Origin: Rebecca billardiae RCC1528
Taxonomy: Eukaryota; Protista; Haptophyta
Length of the DNA: 64,000 bases
Assembly (NCBI GenBank): GCA_965240325.2
Contig: OZ251225.1
Location: 2,294,001 to 2,358,000 of the forward strand
Reading direction: 5' to 3'
Every line of letters begins with the position of its first letter. The first letter of the stretch is position 1. The notes beneath the pieces were generated by a model, which searched no databases, was not told the origin of the DNA, and saw only the letters and a program-made list of their open reading frames with translations. The position numbers and the translations under genes were made by a program. This document shows positions 32,330-45,675 of this stretch, in pieces.

Positions 32330-32455
32330 CACTCCTCCAACCGGAAATCTCCAGCCTGCAAGGGCCAGTGACGAAGCACAAACCGAGCCACCGGACCAAC
32401 GCCCTTGCCCCGCGGGGCGGCGCCCTTCCGCCTTCGTTCACAGCAGCTCACGAGA

Positions 32456-34645
32456 ATGGCTGCCGCACCCGCGGCGGAGGACGCCGTCCCGTCGCTGCAG
32501 CCGCTGCAGTACGTGCCGTTCGCGTCTGCACCCGATGTGGGCTTCTGGCGTGAGCTCGGTCGGCGCAAGCTCGATGACATCGGCCTCGACGACGCGCCCC
32601 TGCCCGTGCGGGGCTGGTTCGAGGTGACGGCGCACGGGCGGACGGCGTGCCAGCTCTTCATCGACGGCACGGCGTTCACGACGGACGCGCCCGCTCCCCC
32701 GGGCGCGTTCGGCGTGCACGGCACGCTCGTGAACACGAACACCCTCGAGGAGTTCAAGCGCGCCGACAAGAACGCGCTGATGGAGCGCGCCGCGCGCGAG
32801 CTGCGCGAGGAGCTGGGCAAGAGCCCGCCTACGCGCCTCACGCGCGTCATCGTGCTCTCGTACGCTGACCTGAAGGCGCACGAGTACTACTACTGGTTCG
32901 GCTTCCCCGCGCTCGCGCCAGCCGTCCCCTTCGCCGGCACGCCGATGATGCGCCTCGAGGACGCGCTCGCGCCGCTCTCGCTCGACCCGCTCCGCGCGGC
33001 GCACCGGCGCGAGGCGATCGGCGCGGGCGGCGAGCTTTCCTTCTTCGCGCTGCGCGTGCACGTGCGCGGCCTGGGCGTGCGCGGCGGCGGCGTGGGCGGC
33101 GCGTCGGAGGTGCACGGCGAGGAGCGCGCCTTCGAGCTCGCGCCGCTCAGCTCGTGGGTCGCGTGGTGCGACGCCGCCGCCTCGGGCGACGCGCCCACGC
33201 CGATGCTCTGCTTTGCCGACCCGACCGTCGACCCAGCGCACGCCGGCTGGCCGCTGCGCACGCTGCTCATGTGGGCGCGCTCGCAGCCGGGCGCGCCGCA
33301 GTACGTGCAGGTGGTCTGCTGGCGCGAGCCGCTCGAGCTGCGCCCGCCCAGCGCCGCCGGGCCCGCGCCCCCGTCCCGCTCGCTCACGCTGCGCGTGCGG
33401 CTACTCCCCGACGCTGAGAGCGGCGTGAGCACAGCCAGCCTGCCCATGGCTGTCGGCTGGGAGCGGAACGCGCGGGGCAAGCTGGGCGCGCGTGTGGTGA
33501 GCCTGCGCGCGCAGCTCGACCCGATCGCGCTGGCCGAGGCGTCGGTCGACCTCAACCTGCGCCTCATGCGCTGGCGCCTGCTGCCCGAGCTCGACACGGC
33601 GCGGCTCGCGCGCACGCGCTGCCTGCTGATCGGCGCCGGCACCCTCGGCTGCAACGTGGCGCGCGCGCTCCTCGCGTGGGGCGTGCGCACGATCACCTTC
33701 GTCGACGGCGGCTCGGTCTCGCACTCGAACCCCGTGCGGCAGAGCCTCTTCACCTACCACGACTGCGTCGGCGACGAGCGCAGGGCCAAGGCCGTCGCGG
33801 CGGCCGAGGCGGTGGGGTGCATCTTCCCGGGTGCGCGCTCGCGAGGCGTCGAGCTGCTCGTGCCAATGCCTGGCCACCCGCCCGCCGACGCCGAGGTCGA
33901 GGCGGTGCGCGAGGCCGTCGAGCAGCTCGAGGGGCTGGTGGAGGAGCACGACGCGGTGTTCCTACTCACCGACACGCGCGAGTCGCGCTGGCTCCCGTCG
34001 CTCCTCTGCGCGGCCAAGGACAAGATCGCGATCACGGCGGCGCTCGGCTTTGATTCGTATGTCGTGATGCGTCACGGCCGCGGCCCGAGCCAGGGCTCGC
34101 AACCGGCGGGTGCGGCCGGGCCCGAGGGCGGCGGGGAGGGCGGCGGGGGCGACGAGGAGGCGCGGCTGGGCTGCTACTTCTGCAACGACGTCGTCGCGCC
34201 CGTCGACAGCACGCGCGACCGCACGCTCGACCAGCAGTGCACCGTGACTCGGCCAGGGCTGTCGATGGTGGCGTCTTCGCTCGCTGTCGAGCTACTGGTC
34301 ACCATCTCGCACCACGCGCAGGGGCACGGCGCGCCCGCGGACGGGCCGGGCGGCGAGCCGTCGACGCCGCTCGGGCTGCTGCCGCACCAGGTGCGCGGCT
34401 TCCTGCCCTCCTTCCGCACCGAGCTCCTCCGCGGCCAGGCGTTTGCATGCTGCGTCGCGTGCTCCGCGCGCGCCGTGCACGGCTATCGCCAGGGCGGCTT
34501 TGCGTTCTGTCTGCGCGCGTTCCGTGAGCCCGACTTCCTCGAGGAGTTCAGTGGGCTGCGCGAGCTGCAGCGCGGGGCGGAGGCGGCGCTGGAGGCGTGG
34601 GAGGGCGACGAGGAGGACGAAGACGATGACGGCGAGCTCAAGTGA
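32456..34645 (+). CDS. ATG7: Autophagy E1-like activating enzyme ATG7; intronless
   Basis: GTLVNTNTLEEFKRADK, YADLKAHEYYYWFGFPAL, SVDLNLRLMRWRLLP, GAGTLGCNVAR, LGCYFCNDVVAP, catalytic TRDRTLDQQCTVTRPG. Confidence 0.96.
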   Translation: MAAAPAAEDAVPSLQPLQYVPFASAPDVGFWRELGRRKLDDIGLDDAPLPVRGWFEVTAHGRTACQLFIDGTAFTTDAPAPPGAFGVHGTLVNTNTLEEFKRADKNALMERAARELREELGKSPPTRLTRVIVLSYADLKAHEYYYWFGFPALAPAVPFAGTPMMRLEDALAPLSLDPLRAAHRREAIGAGGELSFFALRVHVRGLGVRGGGVGGASEVHGEERAFELAPLSSWVAWCDAAASGDAPTPMLCFADPTVDPAHAGWPLRTLLMWARSQPGAPQYVQVVCWREPLELRPPSAAGPAPPSRSLTLRVRLLPDAESGVSTASLPMAVGWERNARGKLGARVVSLRAQLDPIALAEASVDLNLRLMRWRLLPELDTARLARTRCLLIGAGTLGCNVARALLAWGVRTITFVDGGSVSHSNPVRQSLFTYHDCVGDERRAKAVAAAEAVGCIFPGARSRGVELLVPMPGHPPADAEVEAVREAVEQLEGLVEEHDAVFLLTDTRESRWLPSLLCAAKDKIAITAALGFDSYVVMRHGRGPSQGSQPAGAAGPEGGGEGGGGDEEARLGCYFCNDVVAPVDSTRDRTLDQQCTVTRPGLSMVASSLAVELLVTISHHAQGHGAPADGPGGEPSTPLGLLPHQVRGFLPSFRTELLRGQAFACCVACSARAVHGYRQGGFAFCLRAFREPDFLEEFSGLRELQRGAEAALEAWEGDEEDEDDDGELK

Positions 34646-35167
34646 GCGCGCTCGCGACGACGGCGCGCTCTGCTGCGACGCCGCGACGGGCCCATGGCGC
34701 TGCCGGCGCTCCACTCACTGACTCACTCTGCACCGGGCGCCTCTTTGCTACGGCAGTGAAGATGACGACGGACCATGATGATTGATACGCGTGGCGGAAA
34801 GACGACGATGCGTAATGGCCTACTGCGCACAGTCCGGGATCCCTGCTGAAACGCAGTGCAGCGCAGGCGGATGATGATTGATGGCCCGCGGCGCCCGCTG
34901 GCGAGCGGACAATTGGGCATCATCCGTCATAGTCGTATTATTTATAGTCGTGTCATCAGCGCGCATCATCGTCGTCATCAGCAGGCGCGCGCTTTTTACT
35001 CTGTGCATTGCTGCCGCCGCGCCGCGCACGACTCGTCGCGGCGCATACTTTATATATAATGATCTGCTAGCTGCTATAGCTATTTCGGCTGGTAACTAGT
35101 AGTAGTCATTGCTGATGCCGAATCGATCGAGACGATCGACGACATCGTTGGCGCGGCGCCTCACTCG

Positions 35168-38100
35168 TCAAGATTCGTCCCCGCCAGCGGCGTCGGAATT
35201 GGCGCCAGCGGCCGACGGCTGCTCCTGTCGCCCTTTGGCGTTGGCGTCCTCTTTGGACCACTGCCGGCCGATCTCGCTCATCAGCGTGTCGTTCTCTAGG
35301 GCGGCGCTTGACTGGCGCCGCCGCGAAACGCCATGGCCGTCCGCCCCCGACTCATCCGTCGACGTGCGGCGCACAGCGCTCGTCTGCTGCTCCTCGCGCG
35401 CCACGTCTTCAAACTTCGCCTCGAGGAGCGCCTCGAGCGGCCGCGCGGCGACCGCCTGCAGCTGCAGCAGCGTGGAGACCTGTGCGCGCGCGCGCGCGGC
35501 CGGGGGCGACGCTCAGCCGCCGCGCAGAGTAGGCGCGGCCGCGCCGGCCGCTTTGCCCGTGTGCAGCGCGGAGCGCGGGCCTTGCGCCGCGCGCGCGCGC
35601 GGCGCGCAGCGCGCACCCGCTGCTGCAGCTCGCTCGTCATGTGGCTCGCGAAGTCGAGCTTCTCGTGCCAGCGCGCGATGGCGGGCTGCACCGTGTGCAG
35701 CAGGTGCTGCCGCCTCGGCTGGTGCGCCGCCGCCACCTTCTTCAGCCGCTCCCACAGGTGCGGGCGCATTTCGGTGAGCACGTCGCCGTGCTCCCGCTCG
35801 AGCGCGGTCGCGTCGTCGATCAGCTTGCGCGCGTGCCGCGTCGCGCTGATCTGCCGGCTGACCCAGCGCTTGAGCGCGCGCACCTTGGGCATGTACCTGC
35901 GGTGCTCGCGCACGTCCGCCACATCCGTGTCCGCCTTCACCTCCTCCGCGTCGTCCGGCGTGACCCCCTGCTTGGCGGGCTGGCCCGAGCCGCGGCCGGC
36001 GCCTCTCGAGCGCAGCAGCGTTCGTACCACCTCGATCTCGTCGCACCCCTCGCGCTCGGCGTCATCGAGCGGCGTGTTGCCGTAGCTGCGGGCGCGGGCC
36101 GCGGGGCGCGGGCCGCGGGGCGCGGGCGGGCGGGGCCGCGCGGCGTGGGCGTGGCGCAGCAGCACGCCCCGTCCTCCGCCTCTCCGCCGCCCCGCTCCCG
36201 CGCGGCCCTCCGCGCGCGGCCGCGGCGCGCGTGCGCGGCCGTGCGCGCTGCGCACCGGTCCTCGACGTTCATGTCGATGCCTGGCAGGTCGAGCAGCATG
36301 TGGACGGCGTGCACGCGGCCGCACGAGGCCGCGAGGTGCAGCGGGGTGCGCCCGTCGTAGTCCCCCTCGTTCGGGTCGCACACGTGCTCGATCAGCCGCT
36401 GCAGCGTGCCCACGTCGTTGCGCGCGGCCGCGGCGCAAAACTCGACAGGCGCGTCAAAGGAGCCCATGTGGCCTCCGTGCCGCAGCAGCAGGGTGCTCAT
36501 GTTGGCGTGCCGGCCGTGGAAGGCCTCCTGCAGCGGCGTGAGGCCGCGCCAGTCGGCCGCGTTCACGTCCGCGCCCTGCTCGATCAGCAGCCGCGCGTTC
36601 GCCACGTGCCCCTCCGCCGCGGCCAGGTGGAGCGGCGTGCGCGCGCCGTAGTTGGCCGCGCTCACGTCCGAGGCGTCGAAGCCCACCAGATAGCGCAGCT
36701 CCTCGAGAGAGTCGCCCCGGGCGGACGCGGCGCACAGGGCGTCGGCGATGTGCGCGCAGAGGCGCTGCGCGCCGTGCCGGAGGAGCAGCTCCGCCGCGGG
36801 GCCCTGCCGGTGCTTGAGCGCGTCGTGCAGCGCCGTCGTGCCGCGGCGGTCCGTGGCGTTCACATCCGCGCCCGACGCGATGAGCAGCTCGAGCACCCTC
36901 GTGTGGCCCGCGCACGCGGCCACGTGCAGCGGGCGGCGGCCGTCGTAGTCGCCGCGGTTGACGTCGACGGCGCGGGTGGAGAGCAGCTGGCGCACCTTGT
37001 CCAGCTCGCCCTTCGCCGACGCGCCGCACAGCCGCACCGTGTGCAGGTCCTCGCGCTTCTTCTTGGCAGACGCGATGATTTTCTGAATGGTGCTCTGGCC
37101 CTCTGCGGCGTCGCGCGCGCCGCCGCCGCCGTGCCCGCCGCCGCCGTGCGAGGAGGCCGCGTCGGTGCCGGAGTTGTGCGAGCGGGCGCTGCGCGGACCG
37201 CCGCTGCGCGCGGAGGCCTTGGACTTGCCCGAGCGCGCCGAGCGCGCCGAGAGGCCTGCGCGCCGGGCGTGGCGCCGGCGCAGCGCGGTGAGCAAGCGGC
37301 AGGCACAGGCACGGAGCGCGGCAGGATTAGGGTTAGGAGCGCGCGCGCCACGCCGCGCGCACCGCCGCCCGCCTGCGCCTGCAGCCGCATCGCGTTGTCC
37401 ATGATGACGTCCTCCTGGTGCGGGAACGCCTTGAGCAGCGCGCGGTACCGCTCGAGTGTGAGCGCGAACAGCTTGGTCTCCTGCGCGTGGCTGGAGCGCG
37501 CGTTGCTCACGTGCCGCATGCCGAACACGAAGGGGAGCTCGCCGAGCGGCTCGCCCGGCTGCACGAGCTCGAGCGGGGGCGCGCCCGCCTGCCCTTCGCC
37601 CTCGCCCTCGCCGAAGACCTCGACCACGCCGGCCTCGACGATGAAGAGCTCCTTGCAGATGTCGCTCACGCGGAACAGCGTCGTCTCCGGCTCGAGCGTG
37701 CGCTCGCGCAGCAGCGAGGAGAGCCGGTCGACGAAGCCGTCGGAGCAGCCCTTGAAGAGCGCGCACTCGCCCACGAGCGCGCGGTTAGTGTACTGCGAGA
37801 CCTCGATCTGCAGCGAGATCGGCATCTGCGCGTAGATCTGCTCGTCGGGCACGGCGGAGAGCGACGCGTCGCGCAGCCGCGCCTGGAAGAATGCGCCGAT
37901 CTGCGCCTTGAGCTGCGACGGCACCTTCACGTGCTGCAGGTAGCCGTTCACGAGCTCGAGCTGGGCGCGCTTGGTGACGATCTCGTCGTCCTGCCGCATC
38001 ACGAGCGCGGAGATCTTGCCCACGGCGAACGCGTAGATCGTGAAGTTGAGCAGCATCATGAAGAGCACGAAGGCCAGCTCGTAGTAGTTGGCCGGCACCT

Positions 38101-41100
38101 GCCCCGCGCCCAGCGTGGTGATCGCCGAGCTGCAGTGGAAGAGGGAGACGAGGTAGCGCAGGGCCAGCACCTGCAAGGGGGAGGCGCCCCACGCGCCGCC
38201 GCCGTCGGCCTCGGCGCCGACGAGGTCGTCGGCCGTCACGCCGCCCACCTCGGCGGCGTTCGCGTTGAACTGCCCCGCCCACGTCGCCTCGTTCAGCCGC
38301 GCCAGCGCCGAGGTCGCAAAGACATTCCACACGCACGCGCACACGTGCGCGGTGAGCAGGATGAGGCCGTTGTACTGCACGAGCCCGACGAGCAGGTTGT
38401 CGTCCGCCTTGGCGCGCTCGAACGCGCGGTACGCGCGCAGCACGTACCGCACGTTGATCAGCTTGAGGCAGCGCAGCGCCACGACGACGAGGCCGCGGTT
38501 GCCCAGCGCGAGCGCGAGCAGGTCGTTGGGCCACGCCGCCACCAGGTCGAGCGTGAAGTCGCGCGACAGGTAGTGGTGCCGGATCTCGAGCGGCCGGTAG
38601 ATCGTCACGGACTTGGAGTTGACGAACGAGGTGCAGAAGCGCACGCCCACGCGCAGCAGGTAGTACCCGTCGAGCGCAAAGTTCGCGTGCCACACCCACG
38701 CGAGCCGCTCCGCCTCCGCGGCGAAGCACAGGTGCACGGGCGTTTGCAGCGCGTCCCACGCGACCAGGCCGAGGAAGAGGCGCTCGAACAGCAGGTACGC
38801 GCGCGAGGTGTGCGGCACCACGTACCACGGGCGGAGGTTGGCCTCGCCCTCGGCGTCGTCCGCGCCGCCCGCGCTGCTGCCGCCGCCGCCGTCCGCCACC
38901 GCGGTGGAGGCGGCCGTCTCCGCGCCGCCGCGCAGCCAGCGCCGCGCGCGCCCGAGCAGTCGGCGCGACGGCGTGGCGCGCGCCGCCTCGTGCGAGAGAG
39001 CCTCGGCCGCCTCGCGCTGCATCTGCCCCACCGCCTCGCGCAGCGCGCGGCACAGCTGCTCCCACGTCGTGTCCGCGCCGCCGCGCGCAACGCCGCCCTG
39101 CACCACCGCCTCCTTCTCCACGGCGCCCACCGGCTCGCCCTGCACCGGCGCCGCGCCGCGCCGCCCGACCGGCTCGGCGGCGTCGCCAGCGGATGAGCGC
39201 GCCGACTTATACGAGCCCATGGAATCTGAGCAGCGGGTGGCGGCACCGCCGCGGCTGCCGCCGAGCACGCCGGCGGCCGCGTCGCGCCACACCGCGTCGT
39301 CCGCGTTGGGCACGTCGAGGCGCACGCCCTTGAGCCGCGCGGCGTACCACGCCGCGATGTCGTGCGCGCTGAGCGCGCCGCCGGCCGCCTCGGGCAACGC
39401 CGCAGCCACGATCCCGGCGAGCGTCGGCGCTGAGACGCGCTCGGTCGGCTTGAGCTTGTCCGCGTCGATGCGCGCGTGCAGGCTGGTGCACAGCGCCGCG
39501 AGCGCGTCCGCGCTACCGAGCACGCGCGCGAGCTGGTCCTCCGCCGCGCCGTCCGCGGCCGCGGGATCGCGCGCGTCGCCGAGGCGCGGCGCGGCGCGCC
39601 CGTCCGGCGCGCCGCCGCCGCAACGCGCGTCCGGCGAGGGGCGCCCGCCCGCCGCCGGCCCGCCGCCCGAGAGGGCGCTAAGGTGCGCGGTGCGCAGCAG
39701 CAGCAGCGGCGGGACGGCCTCGGACGGCGCGCCGCCCTCCGCCAGCGCGCGCCGCGCCTCCGCCTCCTCCTCCTGCTGCACCTCCTCCGCGCTCGCCAGC
39801 ACCCACGAAGCAGAGCCTGCATAGAACATCGGCGCACTGAGGTCGCACGGCCGCGAGCGCGAGCCGCGTCGCGGCTCGGCGCGGCCGCTCGCAGGCGCCG
39901 CGCCCGCGGGGTCGAGGGCGGTGCCGCCCGTGGGCGCGAGCGCGGGGCCGTGCAGCTCGGCCGCCGCGTCGATCAGGTGCGCCATCAGCGCGCGCACCTC
40001 CGAGCCGCCCAGCTCGCCCAGCCGCGTCTGCAGCTGCCGCACGTCCCGCCAGTGGACGGCGCCGCGCCCGTGCGAGTCAAAGACGCAGTACAGCCCGTGC
40101 AGCACGGACGCCGCCTCGACGAGCGCATCCGGGTGGCTGGCGAGTGCGGCGGAGGAGGCGCGCTGCGCCGCGAGCTGCTCCGCGGCGCTGCGCTGGATGC
40201 GCGCTGCGACGGCCGAGCCTGCGCCCGCGCTCGCGCTCATTGGCTTCCAACGCTGATGCTGCCGCCCGCTGCTGTCCACCGCGCTCGGGCCGCAGCCGGG
40301 CGCGACGCGGCCTTCGGTGGCGGCGCGTCGGCGGTACCCGCGCGATGGCTCGTCCGTCGTCGTCGCGAGCGAGAGACTCGAGCCGCTGCCAGACAGCTTC
40401 TTCGGCCCAGGCCCCGCGCCCGCGCCGCCGCAGCCCTCGTGCGCGCCCTTGCAACGGTCGGAGTAACGGTCGGTGTAACGGTCGGTGTAGCCGGGCGCGG
40501 GGGCGGCGGCGCGCTCGCCCAGCGGGCAGTGCCGGCGCACGTCGAGCACGGCCGAGGCGCGCGACTCGGCCGGCGGCGCGTCGCCCCCGCGCCCGGAGCG
40601 GCTCGAGCCCACGGGCGACGCCGTGCCGGGCGGGGCCTCCGGGTCGACCGCGGCGGTGGCGCGCAGCCAGCCGCCGACAGCACAGCGCGAGGTGCGGCGC
40701 GCGCCGCTGTGCCGCGGCTCGCGCCCGCCGGCGGCGGGCGGCCATAGCTGCTGCTGCTGCTCAGCGCCGCCGCCGCCGCCGCCGGGCGGCGACGGCGGCG
40801 GCGTGACGCGCGCCTGTGGCGCAGACCTGCGCGCCTCGCGGCGCGAGCGCAGCGGCGATGCGCACAGCGACCAGCCTGGCTGCGACGCGGGCGAGGCGGG
40901 CGCCGAGCCGGCGTGCCGCGCGCTCGCCGCGTGCACGAGCGTGCGCACAAACGTGCCCGAGAAGAAGACCAGCCGGTACCCCAGCTGGGAGAGGTGCAGG
41001 GGTTGGCCGTTGTCACCGCCGGCAGCCCCTCCGACCTCTGAGGCCGGCGGCTCGGCCGCGGTGCCCGCCGCGCTCCCTGTGGGGCTGCCCACGCCGGCCG

Positions 41101-44100
41101 CGCCGCGCGAGAGGCAGCAGCCGCCTTTGGAGTTGCGCCGCGCGGCGGCCGGCGCCGACGGCGGCGGCTGTTGCGGCGGCGGCGGCGGCTGCGCTTCGCA
41201 GCCCTGCGCCGCCGCGTCGTCCGCAGCGCTCGCGCGCCGCGGCGCACGCGGGCCTAGCGTGGCGCGGAGCTCGTCGTAGATCTCGTCCACCACCTGCTCG
41301 AGCAGCGCCTCGTCCTCGAAGCCGCACTCGGCGCGCAGGATGCCGCGCAGCGCTTGCTCCTCCGCGCGGCGCCGCTGCGCGTCGCCCAGCGCCGAGTGCG
41401 CGGCCGGCGCGAGCGTGCGCGCAAACGCGTGCTTGAGCATCGTCAGCCCGCCCTCGGCGCGCGGGAGCCGCAGGACGAGCGGCAGGAAGGCGCTCGTCGC
41501 GCTCGCCTTGGTCTTGACGGCCAGATGCTGCGCCCTCGCGCCCGCGCACGCCGCCGGCGCGCCGCCGGCCGGCTGGGCGGTGCCGCACCCGCCGCCGCCA
41601 TCGGCCGAGCCGCGGGCTGGGAGGGAGGCGACGCTGCCACCGAGTGCTGCCGCGCCGCCCCTGGCCGAGCAGGGCGCGCTGCCGCCGTCGGAGTCGGTGC
41701 CGCTCTCGTCCGACGGCTCGGCGAGCGCGCCCGCGACCTCGCCCTCCGCCGCCTCCTCCTCGAGCGAATCTTGCGAGCTCGTCTCGTCCAGATTCTCGTG
41801 CAGGGCATATGCGCCGATCCACTCGTCCGCCGAGCGCTCGATCTGCGCAAACAGCCGCGACTGGAGGACGCTCAGCTCGGCCATCGCGCGGGAGAGCGTC
41901 TTGAGCTCGAGCTCGAGCTCGCGCCGCGTGAGCTGCCGCGCGGTGAGCGTCTGCGTCCGGTGCATCTCGCGCGCGCGCAGCTTGTCCAGCACAGTCGCAA
42001 TGTCGTACGACTGAGCCACCCTGTACAGCGCGCACAGGATGCGCTCGGGCTCGTACCGGGGCGGCAGCGTGGCGGAGCACTGGTGCACGAGGAGGGCGGC
42101 GACCTCACTGTTGTGCTCGAGCGCGTCGATCAGCGCCGTCGCGCCCCACCGGTCCACGGCGCGCACGTCCGCCAGCGCGGAGATCAGGCAGTGCGTCGTC
42201 GAGATCGAGCCCGCGCACACGGCCAGGTGGAGCGGCGTGCGCGCGTCGTAGTCGGCCGCGTGCAGCGGCGCGCCCGCGTGCACGAGGAAGCGAACGAGGT
42301 TGACGTTGCCGTCGGAGGCGGCGGTGCACAGCCGGTTGAACACGGTGAGCGGGTTCGCGCGCGCGCCGCGCTGCACGTGCAGGTGCGCCACCAGCTCGTG
42401 CTCGTTGCTCAGCGCGTCGTCGATCGGCTTGTTGCCCCAGCGGTCGCGCAGGTTCACGTCTGCGAGCGCGCCCATCAGGAACTCGACCAGCCGCATGTCG
42501 CCCTCGGCGGAGGCGAGGTGCAGCGCGGAGCGCCCGTCGTAGTCGACGGTGTTGATCTCGACGCCGTGCGAGAGCAGCGCCTGCACGCGCGCGATCGAGC
42601 CCTGCGCCACCGCCTCGAGCAGCAGCGCGCACGGCCGCTGCAGCTTGAGCTCCGCGCCCTGCGCGCTCAGCACGCTAGCCACCTCCGCGTGGTTGGAGAC
42701 GATGGCGTCGCGCAGCGGGGTGGAGCCCCAGCGGTCGGTGAGCGAGGGGTTGGCGGTGAGCTCGCACAGCAGCGCCACCACCTTCGCGTTGCCCTCCGCC
42801 GCCGCGAGGTGCAGCGTCGTGCGCCTGTCGTAGTTGCCCGCGTTCACGTCCAGGCCCTTGGCGGCGAGCGCGCGCACCGTCTCGACGTCGCCGATCGAGG
42901 CGGCGTAGCTCATCTGCGTGATCGCCTCCTCGTTGCCCTCGACGATGGTCTGCTGGATGATCGCGCGCAGCGCTGCGCACGTAGAGGGAGGCGGAGGGGC
43001 GGGCGCCGCGGCGGCAGCGTCCGCCGCAAACTGGTTGGTCTCGTGGCTCGGCGCGGCGGCGCGCCATGGTAGTGCGGTGCGCGGTCGGCGCGGCGCGCAC
43101 CCTCAAACTCCTCCTGCTCGTCCTCGGAGAGCGCGCCGCCCAGCCCCGCGCCAGTGTCCGTGACGACCGTGCCCTGCCGGTCCAGCCCGAACTTGCGCAG
43201 CATATTCGCCACGATCAGGTCCGCCTGCTCCGGGTACGCGCCGATGATCTCGTCGTAGTCCGCGCCCGTGATCACGAGCAGCGTCACGTCCCCGGCGGCG
43301 GTCGCGCTCACGGTGAACGGCTGCTGGATGCCGAGGAAGAAGCCGAGCTCGCCGACGACCTGGCCGTCGCCGAGGTCTGAGCGCAGCGTGGACTGGTGCA
43401 CGTCGCCCTTCCGCACGTGCAGCGAGCCGTTGGTCAGCCATAGCAGCTCCCTCGAGCCCTCGCCCTGGTTGAAGAGCACCTCGAGCGGCATCACGTACCG
43501 CTCCTTGAGCACGATCACGATCTGGTTGAGGAACTGCGGGTTGCAGCCGTGGAAGACCCACGCGCCCTGCACGTGGCGCGAGTGCGTCGCTGACGCGACC
43601 TTCACCTTGAGCGAGAGCGGCATCTGCTCGAAGATCGTCTCGGTCGAGCTCGAGCGCTTCGTGTGCTGGAACTCGAAGTGCGAGCGGATCTTCTTGGACA
43701 CCGCCGGCGGCAGCGAGCGCTTGGCGCAGTACTCGTCAACCGCGCGCAGCAGCTCCTTGAAGTGCGCCGTGTTGCTGTCCACGCGCACGAGGTAGTGGAA
43801 GAGCGTGCCGAGCACGAACGCGTAGAACACCTGCCGCGCGCGAGAGGGGGAGCAGATGGCCCCGCATGCACGCGCGCGTCAGCCATCCCGCGCGCATGGC
43901 CGGCTGACGAGTCGAATGGAGTGCGCACTGCGCCGCTCCTTCGCAGTCTGACGTGCGCGCACGATTTGCACGATGCAGATCAGGACGGCAAATGCCAGCT
44001 CGTTCACCTTGGTCAGCGTGAGGGGGCCGTACCCCATGGCCGAGATGCCCGACCACGCCATGAAAAGAGAGAGCATGTACCGCTGCCAGTCGCTCGCCTC

Positions 44101-45200
44101 CGCCGGGTCGAACTGCGAGTTGTCCGCGAGCAGCTCGAACTGCGCGCTCCACGAGGGAAGCGCCAGCTTGGCGCCCGCGCCGTGCTCGGCGAGCAGCCAC
44201 CAGAGGCACGCGACCCTGCGAGTGGTGGTGCGCGCGCAGGGAGCGTAGGCGGTTGGGGCGTGTCGCGTGCAGGCGGGAGGCGTCAGTAGTGAGCCATCCT
44301 CCATGCATGCCTCCAGGCCGCGCACCGCGCGCACCAGTGCGGCACGGAGAAGAGGAACACGCTGAACTTGTACGTCGCGAGGAAGGCGACGTTGGTCGTC
44401 AGGTCGCCGTTCATCAGGTGCACGTAGCTCATCAGGTCGAACACGCGGCCGAGCCGCACGAGCTGGGCCGCCCACCAAACGTACGGGAACGACAGCAGCA
44501 TGTACACAGCACGACCGCTGTGCAGCACGACGACGGTGAGCAGGTCGCGCGCGAGGCGCGTGCGCGTGTACACATGGTCTGCAGGCTCTGCTGCCCGCGC
44601 CTTGCCTCGCCGCCGCGCGTGTCGGAGCTCCTCGAACACGCAGACGAGCTCGAACGCATCGGCCACGACATCGATCACAATCACAGCGGGTGCGGCGAGG
44701 AGCGTCCTCGGGAATGCGAGACGCGCGGGGATGGCAACGAGCTCGTACGTGAGCAGCGGGAGCCTCATCGCCTTGTACACCGCCACCCACCATGCGCGCA
44801 CCTCGTTCTCCGCGTCGCGCAGGCGCTGCTCGCTGTCGGCGTTCTCCACGCCGCGCTCGCCCAGGTCGTCGACGACGAGGCCGGGCAGCCAGCTGACGTG
44901 CAGGTGGCGCTTCGAACTGCGAACGGCGCTGTGGCGGAGAATGCCGACTCTATCTGTGCTAATGATCGCGCGCTCACTGCCCCGTCGGCAGCAGGGGAGC
45001 AGGCGTTGCCAGCGCGGTCCCGTGCCGTGGGCCATCACGTGGTCGCGAAACGCGCTGGATGGTCGTCCGAAGAAAGCGAGCGCGAGCTCCGGCCAAGCTT
45101 GGCGCCACCGCTGGCGCCACCGCTCGCCAGCGGTTCTACTTGCTTGATTCAAAGCTGTTCGCCTTCTCCGTGTTCGGTGGTTCGTTGATGACATGATCAT
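35168..45200 (-). CDS. Tandem double Shaker/SKOR-AKT-like channel, 2 x (6TM pore + CNBD + ankyrin repeats), ~3,079 aa; exons 45200-44335, 44215-43963, 43830-43101, 42972-37363, 37255-36256, 36085-35617, 35479-35168
   Basis: Unit 1: HW|VACLWWLL, pore SAMGYGPL, FHGCNPQFLNQIV (SKOR-like), CNBD GELGFFLGIQQPFTV, ankyrins (DYDGRSALHLA). Unit 2: HVCACVW, pore TTLGAGQV, LFKGCSDGFVDRL, GELPFVFG, ankyrins. Six GTGCGC..CAG introns sum to 9,240 coding nt in frame. Confidence 0.85.
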
Positions 45201-45475
45201 AGTCACTGGTGATTATGATCAGCTCATCAGCCAGCAACCTCAAATCAGCCTCTATTGCGAAGCGCTATATTTGTTTGACGAATATAGCCATGTACCCGAC
45301 AATTTTCGTGGTACGGCCCTTGATTGTGGTTTTTGGGAGCTGCCTTGCGCTCTGATGTGTACCCCATAATTGAAAAAACGCCAACGGTGTAGCCATTTCG
45401 GTTCACGACCGGAACTGCCGACGACGACGAAACAGGAGCGACTTGCGCCGTCAAACGTCGCTGAACAAGGGAAAA

Positions 45476-45675
45476 GACCAATTCTATGATTTAAAGACAC
45501 CTGCAGGCACGAGGGCGCAGCTCTCCTGATTCGTCTGTCGAAGTACTGATTGGAGACAGAGGGTGTTGAGCGCGTTGGCCGCGGGTGAGGACCTAGTCGT
45601 CGCCGATGCTCGGATCACACGGAGGCAGTAGGTGCCCAGGGATGCCGCTGAAGTATTTGCAGTCGTCGCCGGCCT
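45476..45675 (-). repeat. Dispersed repeat family, conserved terminus (copy 2, ~200 bp)
   Basis: The reverse complement aligns with 52611-52810, including CAGTACTTCGACAGACGAATCAGGAGAGCTGCGCCCTCGTGCCTG..GTGTCTTTAAATCATAGAATT. Confidence 0.9.

Follow-up and report, generated by a model that had tools for sequence, protein, structure and literature searches.

We describe here a gene of the haptophyte Rebecca billardiae RCC1528 that encodes a single membrane protein of 3,079 residues, in which two non-identical subunits of the CNBD (cyclic-nucleotide-binding domain) channel superfamily follow each other in series. It lies on the minus strand of a 64,000-nucleotide (nt) stretch of contig OZ251225.1 (assembly GCA_965240325.2, positions 2,294,001 to 2,358,000), which we refer to as the window and whose own numbering is used throughout. 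The overall best explanation, to which we give a probability of about 0.55, is that this is one doubled-chain gene of an old family, and that its product would form a dimeric channel with alternating units, an asymmetric pore and weakened selectivity for K+. The initial annotation took the gene to represent an undescribed class of channel. That goes too far, as tandem CNBD channels with two repeats were already known from a description of sequences in 2020 (PMC7576140), and what appears to be new here is the ankyrin-bearing doubled form.

The gene model

The starting point was an open reading frame (ORF) of 2,017 codons on the minus strand (36860-42913), which runs from ankyrin repeats through about 1,000 low-complexity codons into an Ion_trans and then a cNMP_binding domain. 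The minus-strand ORFs upstream of it contain another pore (SAMGYGP) and another CNBD, and those downstream another ankyrin block and a tail. Splice sites were chosen by testing all GT/GC-AG pairs at each junction, with the closest homologue as guide; this is P0001, a protein of 2,647 residues translated from an 8,108-nt MMETSP transcript contig and collinear with the whole model, which is as follows.

35168-45200, minus strand: whole coding region of the doubled channel gene, 7 exons, 3,079 residues plus stop, spliced model guided by P0001
45200-44335, minus strand: exon 1
44215-43963, minus strand: exon 2
43830-43101, minus strand: exon 3
42972-37363, minus strand: exon 4, 5,610 nt
37255-36256, minus strand: exon 5
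36085-35617, minus strand: exon 6
35479-35168, minus strand: exon 7, the last, set by the GTGCGC donor at 35616 and the acceptor ending at 35480
44334-44216, 43962-43831, 43100-42973, 37362-37256, 36255-36086 and 35616-35480, minus strand: the six introns

The seven exons sum to 9,240 nt, that is 3,079 codons and one terminal stop, and are free of stops inside. The single spliced frame of about 3,079 residues proposed earlier is thus recovered with its exact length and ends, and the stop-free 5.6-kb exon said to join the two units is reproduced exactly (42972-37363, no stop in 1,870 codons). All six introns are of 107-170 nt and 72-91% GC, with an extended GTGCGC donor and a CAG acceptor. This set of introns could serve as a splice-site model for the R. 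billardiae genome.

Exon 4 joins the ankyrin repeats of unit 1 to the channel of unit 2 through a linker of about 1,000 codons, over which the remaining two sense frames have 5 and 6 stops. In every 300-nt interval of exon 4 the GC content at third codon positions (GC3) is high, at 0.91-0.95 over the linker and 0.98-0.99 in the domains, and that at second positions (GC2) is 0.34-0.80. Non-coding DNA would not hold a three-base periodicity in one frame, and we thus take the linker to be coding. TGTAA and AATAAA are absent throughout exon 4. The window as a whole is GC-rich (0.61-0.83 in 2-kb intervals), and 200-nt intervals with GC below 0.62 are limited to 34800-35100 and 45100-45600, the outer flanks of the gene. 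In exon 4 there are 16 GTGCGC motifs, some of them within clear coding domains, and hidden introns therefore cannot be called from the motif there.

The alternative is that there are two adjacent genes, with the frame open by chance over a GC-rich spacer; unit 1 would then end at a poly(A) site, and unit 2 start from its own promoter, both within 41800-38830. The transcript support comes from relatives, and the public models KFE25_012279 and KFE25_012280 of Diacronema lutheri do split such loci. However these models cut and merge the copies of a repeated locus wrongly, one of them spanning two 12-kb repeat copies, and the spacer in our gene has the GC3 and the open frame given above, has no dip in GC, lacks both TGTAA and AATAAA and includes a conserved in-frame island. 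Both a full-length orthologous transcript (P0001) and an intronless doubled ORF (P0006, see below) also exist. Two genes are disfavoured on these grounds, and we consider them very improbable.

The two channel units

The features of unit 1, the N-terminal unit, are these.

43774-44798, minus strand: transmembrane (TM) domain S1-S6 (residues 135-392, spans introns 1 and 2), collinear with P0001 at 44-50% identity
44462-44436, minus strand: S4, LVRLGRVFD
44023-44043, minus strand: filter 1, SAMGYGP, which aligns with TALGYGK of P0001 and MATVGYGD of SKOR
43180-43773, minus strand: C-linker and CNBD-homology domain, Pfam cNMP_binding 8.9e-11 (exon 3)
43353-43309, minus strand: cassette, GELGFFLGIQQPFTV; the P0001 cassette aligns to GEISILCNIPQPYTV of SKOR, without Arg
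42077-42964, minus strand: ankyrin-repeat region (residues 620-915), Pfam Ank_2 1.7e-32 and further Ank families
41792-42076, minus strand: helical tail after the ankyrin repeats (residues 916-1010), matching P0001 as far as its residue 972

Those of unit 2, the C-terminal unit, are these.

37988-38833, minus strand: TM domain S1-S6 (residues 1997-2278), Pfam Ion_trans 1.7e-09
38476-38426, minus strand: S4, LRCLKLINVRYVLRAYR
38099-38119, minus strand: filter 2, TTLGAGQ, of which HMMER aligns TLGAG with SVGFG of hERG
37382-37987, minus strand: C-linker and CNBD, Pfam cNMP_binding 1.6e-06
37543-37499, minus strand: cassette, GELPFVFGMRHVSNA, with an RH pair that is invariant in nine unit-2 sequences
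36055-37082, minus strand: ankyrin-repeat region (residues 2545-2830, spans intron 5), Pfam Ank_2 6.3e-40
35171-36054, minus strand: C-terminal tail (residues 2831-3079, spans intron 6), 35% identity to P0001 residues 2452-2605

Judged by sequence and predicted fold, both units belong to the CNBD channel superfamily, with a six-TM (6TM) voltage sensor and pore followed by a C-linker and a CNBD or CNBD-homology domain. The PDB matches by sequence and by fold (SKOR, GORK, AKT1, hERG, HCN and CNG) span the full length of the units. The two units are 27% identical over 692 columns, and the earlier description of two complete, diverged 6TM-pore-CNBD-ankyrin units on one chain stands.

In the case of unit 1 the 6TM status rests on the orthologue P0001, which is 53% identical, as Pfam Ion_trans was unscored on the exon-split TM part, for which the separate exons were scanned. 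The initial annotation had looked to Pfam to find Ion_trans, cNMP_binding and Ank twice each, and this was borne out for cNMP_binding and Ank in both units and for Ion_trans in unit 2, leaving Ion_trans in unit 1 as the part that was not. The best PDB sequence matches of P0001 unit 1 are SKOR and GORK, down to 2.7e-27 (SKOR). Its AlphaFold model (mean predicted local distance difference test score, pLDDT, 64) has six TM helices and a pore helix, then a C-linker and beta-roll, with five residues between helices 128-142 and 148-176, which is a short S4-S5 link; Foldseek again puts SKOR and GORK on top.

Unit 2 over residues 1-480 matches hERG, GORK and HCN1 in the PDB at 1e-23 to 1e-20. Its own AlphaFold model (pLDDT 73) likewise has six TM helices, a pore helix, a short S4-S5 link (helices 113-139 and 145-172 are only five residues apart), a C-linker and a beta-roll, and in Foldseek GORK, CNGA3 and SKOR are on top at about 1e-21. 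After GORK and SKOR, the Foldseek matches of the unit models are CNG, AKT1 and HCN.

The filters are where they were first reported, SAMGYGP at 44043-44023 and TTLGAGQ at 38119-38099, and filter 1 keeps the GYG and loses the Thr and Asp of TxGYGD. Both S4 segments are indeed charge-poor, with RxxR in unit 1 and RxxK and later arginines in unit 2. With regard to the cassettes, both were said to have lost the canonical arginine. This holds for unit 1, which has a SKOR-like pattern with no Arg (QQPFTV, against PQPYTV in SKOR). In unit 2 the canonical Arg column is taken by His, with an invariant Arg at the position just before it.

The linker

38834-41791, minus strand: low-complexity cytosolic linker (residues 1011-1996), Ala 21%, Gly 13%, Arg 9%, stop-free
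39974-40102, minus strand: conserved linker island (residues 1574-1616), an EF-hand-like helix-loop-helix, found by tblastn to P0001

Since the number of TM helices in each unit is even, both ends of the linker would be cytosolic. The linker is for the most part disordered. Its island of about 43 residues is 39% identical to P0001 residues 1333-1432 in the same frame (tblastn), aligns in five homologues and is also present in L006, the locus of another doubled gene. The pattern of the island is FD-x-x-G-x-G-x-[VI]-x-x-x-D, and with His/Arg or Ser/Thr at positions 3 and 5 of the loop, binding of Ca2+ is doubtful. Pfam gave no meaningful family in the whole linker or in the island scanned alone. 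Tandem copies of the gene in D. lutheri were compared for selection on the linker, and gave a single linker mismatch, the copies being near-identical.

Fused relatives

The nearest relatives in a search with unit 2 are Diacronema proteins and MMETSP transcripts, which point to a haptophyte, and these are long proteins instead of single channels. P0001 has 44-50% identity in unit 1, 52% in the first ankyrin region and tail, 51% in unit 2, 53% in the second ankyrin region and 35% in the C-terminal tail, in addition to the linker island. P0006 is an intronless doubled ORF of 2,899 residues, seen on three independent contigs (L002, L003 and L004) from metagenome and Logan data. Other ORFs flank P0006 within 8-105 nt, and this spacing, with the lack of introns, indicates a very compact host genome.

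In D. lutheri the region L005 (JAGTXO010000011.1, 31855-70046 reversed) repeats head to tail every 12,073 bp: there are 2.5 or more copies of unit 1, a spacer of about 3 kb and unit 2, almost identical to each other (64 mismatches in 10.3 kb). At L005:8354-13012 one open frame connects the unit 1 tail with the unit 2 TM domain. Such an array may have arisen by tandem amplification not long ago, or it may be an artefact of the assembly. P0003 was considered as a single unit and rejected, as it is the 3' part of the doubled gene at L006, which has the same unit order.

Clustered at 50% identity, the fused homologues of haptophytes, Rhodelphis and a prasinophyte amount to at least 12 groups, which disposes of the possibility, raised at the outset, that homologues are never fused. 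Named long members are three Rhodelphis marinus proteins, KFE25_008060 of D. lutheri (2,867 residues in one public model), CYMTET_27222 of Cymbomonas tetramitiformis and more MMETSP transcripts. In each of P0030 (Rhodelphis), P0039 (D. lutheri) and P0041 (Cymbomonas), Pfam finds two Ion_trans and two cNMP_binding domains, with Ank in either half. In all long members the first unit scores better with the unit-1 hidden Markov model and the second better with that of unit 2.

A profile of nine unit-2 sequences (A1) was searched against 1.84 billion representatives, with a cut-off of E up to 0.001, and gave 17,143 matches. Among the proteins examined, mostly the best 150 of the 17,143, there are two units in 45, three in 18 and four in 17. 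The short two-unit proteins, of about 1,250-1,500 residues, include SDRG_09436 of Saprolegnia diclina (1,314 residues), an oomycete and so from a group with published tandem channels, and a protein of Prasinoderma coloniale. Many metagenomic proteins of 1,900-2,900 residues (P0029, P0044-P0049 and others) have three or four CNBD-channel units; these cluster with the short tandem channels, apart from the doubled ankyrin family, and suggest a wide occurrence of CNGK-like concatenation beyond animals.

Unit-1-type sequences were recovered only in doubled proteins or as fragments: the unit-1 profile search found no complete stand-alone unit-1 protein and three fragments only, on contigs of 1.5-4 kb, which makes this a weak negative. 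For unit 2 there is P0007 (L007:385-8088, from an MMETSP-type transcript), a complete protein in which a unit of the unit-2 type (6TM, CNBD and ankyrin repeats) stands alone. The N-terminus of P0007 has four PAS domains and an RGS domain, an unusual sensor-channel fusion.

Origin of the fusion

A careful IQ-TREE analysis used 54 units, 470 columns and LG+C20, omitting P0092, P0044, P0049, P0010 and 18 more long-branch or redundant units. All 11 first repeats form one clade (100/100) and all second repeats another (100/100), and a third clade (99/99) has both repeats of the short tandem channels, including those of Saprolegnia, and one four-repeat protein. A quick tree of 85 rows repeats this pattern. 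The branching among first repeats mirrors that among second repeats, with the Diacronema protein beside the close haptophyte set, the Rhodelphis trio together, and Cymbomonas with P0053. The tree is unrooted and its deep part is a three-way split, from which we read no order of the three clades; no named dinoflagellate sequence was among the units used.

As first repeats and second repeats each have a mirrored clade of their own and the short tandem channels a third, we conclude that the fusion was single, old and separate from that of the oomycete-type tandem channels. On this evidence a SKOR/GORK-like first unit was fused once to a more diverged second unit, and the product is now present in haptophytes, Rhodelphis and prasinophyte green algae.

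Variation in the filters

Repeat 1 reads GYG in the window gene, P0001, P0020, P0028 and P0039, GYA in P0006 and GYS in a D. lutheri copy, and GNL, GYQ, GYD, GYI or AFV in Rhodelphis, Cymbomonas and others; by this alignment GYG in repeat 1 is kept in the haptophyte branch only. Repeat 2 is without GYG in every member examined. The window gene has TTLGAGQ and the nearest orthologue TTLGMES, and others have SGLGLNQ, STLGLAQ or TRTGQTQ. The post-filter motif LP(A/S)NY and S6 of repeat 2 are strongly conserved, as are the unit 2 C-linker and the RH pair of the cassette.

The expectation that relatives would carry the same pair of filters was thus not borne out, repeat 1 also varying beyond the close haptophyte set, and the GYG/GAG pair is specific to this gene and not a signature of the doubled family. 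GAG is missing from the nearest orthologues and recurs in deeper units of the unit-2 clade, as [IVM]GAG[DNS] in P0068, P0080, P0089 and P0107, which were counted as single units and come from possibly incomplete proteins. The G-A-G filter may therefore be recurrent and possibly ancestral in the unit-2 clade, and not a one-off. In the Saprolegnia and Prasinoderma repeats S4 has regularly spaced basic residues.

Comparison with known channels

The tandem CNBD channels with two repeats in Pozdnyakov et al. 2020 (PMC7576140) are from dinoflagellates and oomycetes and have TVGYG-like filters, with first and second repeats falling in separate clades; ankyrin is not mentioned in that paper, which reports no non-canonical filters for these channels and no haptophyte tandem channel. 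They resemble the present family in having two 6TM-CNBD repeats per chain, separate co-diverging clades and low identity between repeats, and differ in their length of about 1,250-1,500 residues, in the lack of any mention of ankyrin and in both filters being TVGYG-like. The Saprolegnia repeats are in the 99/99 clade that excludes both repeat types found here, which argues for a separate fusion. In the literature searched there was no paper on an ankyrin-bearing doubled CNBD channel and nothing relevant on a GAG filter.

The plant Shaker channels SKOR, GORK and AKT1 share with our units S1-S6, the C-linker, a CNBD-homology domain without the cassette Arg (unit 1) and the ankyrin order, and the short S4-S5 link of the models would fit the non-swapped layout of the CNBD family. 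However they have one unit per chain and four chains per channel, where we have two units per chain, and their filter is TxGYGD, in contrast to AMGYGP and TLGAGQ here; our S4 segments have fewer charges and there is the linker of about 1,000 residues. TPC and K2P channels are dimers of two-repeat chains, with a pseudo-tetrameric pore and non-equivalent P-loops (pore loops). They are of other families, TPC being without CNBD and ankyrin and K2P without voltage-sensor domains.

CNGK of sperm and choanoflagellates has four 6TM-CNBD repeats (PMC4749565; discussed in PMC7576140), and like our protein is a covalent concatenation of such repeats in one pore-forming chain. It differs in having four repeats and not two, no ankyrin and gating by cyclic GMP (cGMP), and the four-unit proteins that we found cluster with the short tandem channels and not with the doubled ankyrin family.

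Two further cases bear on assembly. AKT1 and AtKC1 form 2:2 heterotetramers (10.1101/2024.12.27.630498). As in PDB 7wm1 this is a 2:2 pore of two kinds of Shaker-like subunit, one of them non-conducting alone; it differs in that the genes are separate and the ratio is not hard-wired, whereas the fusion would fix 2:2 here. In GORK and SKOR the ankyrin (ANK) domains of neighbouring protomers dimerise, which changes the symmetry from C4 to C2 and gives autoinhibition (PMC12742848).

Assembly and function

Each subunit is predicted to have six TM helices with a P-loop, a C-linker and CNBD-homology domain, about 300 ankyrin residues and a helical tail. Two chains would most likely dimerise into one pore with units 1 and 2 in alternation, in line with other two-repeat channels, and the filter would then be made of two AMGYG and two TLGAG loops. 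We would expect a cation channel with weakened K+ selectivity, with weak voltage dependence since S4 is charge-poor, and under the control of the cytosolic layer of CNBD-homology and ankyrin domains and not of classical binding of cyclic AMP or cGMP. The ankyrin domains of unit 1 and unit 2 may form a fixed pair, comparable to the ANK dimer by which GORK is kept two-fold symmetric and autoinhibited. An alternating dimer with paired ankyrin domains is reasonable given the ANK dimers of GORK and SKOR and the 2:2 heterotetramers of AKT1 and AtKC1.

Several points weigh against this proposal. The transcript support is from relatives, so the gene itself could conceal further introns or have a promoter inside it. 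With about 1,000 residues, the linker imposes no geometric constraint on the units to share one pore, and P0007 shows that unit-2-type subunits can exist without a fused unit 1. The structures are monomer models of moderate confidence, in which the filter loops and parts of the CNBD are poorly resolved. Finally the sequence of a filter is not enough to tell its selectivity, as PMC7576140 also notes, and the channel function of the whole family is predicted from sequence.

Some of these points would suit an assembly of four chains with two tethered pores, one a unit-1 GYG homotetramer and the other a unit-2 non-GYG homotetramer, held in equal numbers by the linker. The linker is indeed mostly low-complexity and far longer than the roughly 30-280 residues of the short tandem channels, and the P0007 type of subunit may homotetramerise. 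However no complete stand-alone unit-1-type proteins were found in the unit-1 profile search, first and second repeats have co-diverged in matching order in three lineages, and the textbook cases, TPC and K2P, put both repeats in one pore. We think two pores unlikely, but worth keeping in mind.

It could also be that unit 2 is silent or modulatory, and that the pore conducting K+ is that of unit 1, with which unit 2 co-assembles mainly to tune its gating or trafficking, in the manner of AtKC1 with AKT1. The filter of repeat 2 varies freely in close orthologues (TLGAGQ, TLGMES, GLGLNQ, RTGQTQ) while conservation is strong in the post-filter motif, S6, the C-linker and the RH pair, and the 2:2 heterotetramers of AKT1 and AtKC1 provide a precedent. 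Yet two non-GYG loops in a shared pore would still line the path, which makes this hard to separate from altered permeation, and unit 1 is itself without GYG beyond the haptophyte branch. A purely modulatory unit 2 seems to us rather improbable.

The dimer with a shared, asymmetric pore thus remains our preferred explanation, and it can be extended, more tentatively and at somewhat worse than even odds, to the family as a whole. This would be an ancient hard-wired 2:2 Shaker-like family, undescribed in the literature searched, with two K+-type and two non-K+-type loops, non-selective and possibly permeable to Ca2+. Its symmetry and autoinhibition would be fixed by intramolecular ankyrin pairing, the linker island would be regulatory, and the fusion would have been kept since before the split of haptophytes, Rhodelphis and green algae, or passed between them.

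Annotation and significance

In public databases the members of this family are present only as hypothetical proteins or mis-split gene models. We suggest that the gene model given here be used as a template for correcting split annotations in GC-rich haptophyte genomes. Next to the gene, an ORF of 746 residues on the plus strand (32405-34645 of the window) converges on its 3' end, with about 520 nt of GC-poorer DNA between the two stop codons.

Concatenated channels fix the order and ratio of their subunits, and are thus natural experiments on asymmetric pores. The present family pairs a SKOR/GORK-like unit with a non-GYG second unit, and at least three distant lineages of algae and protists have kept it. 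It raises the questions of whether two GYG and two non-GYG loops would still select K+, and whether gene fusion may have made permanent the ANK-driven two-fold symmetry of GORK and SKOR.

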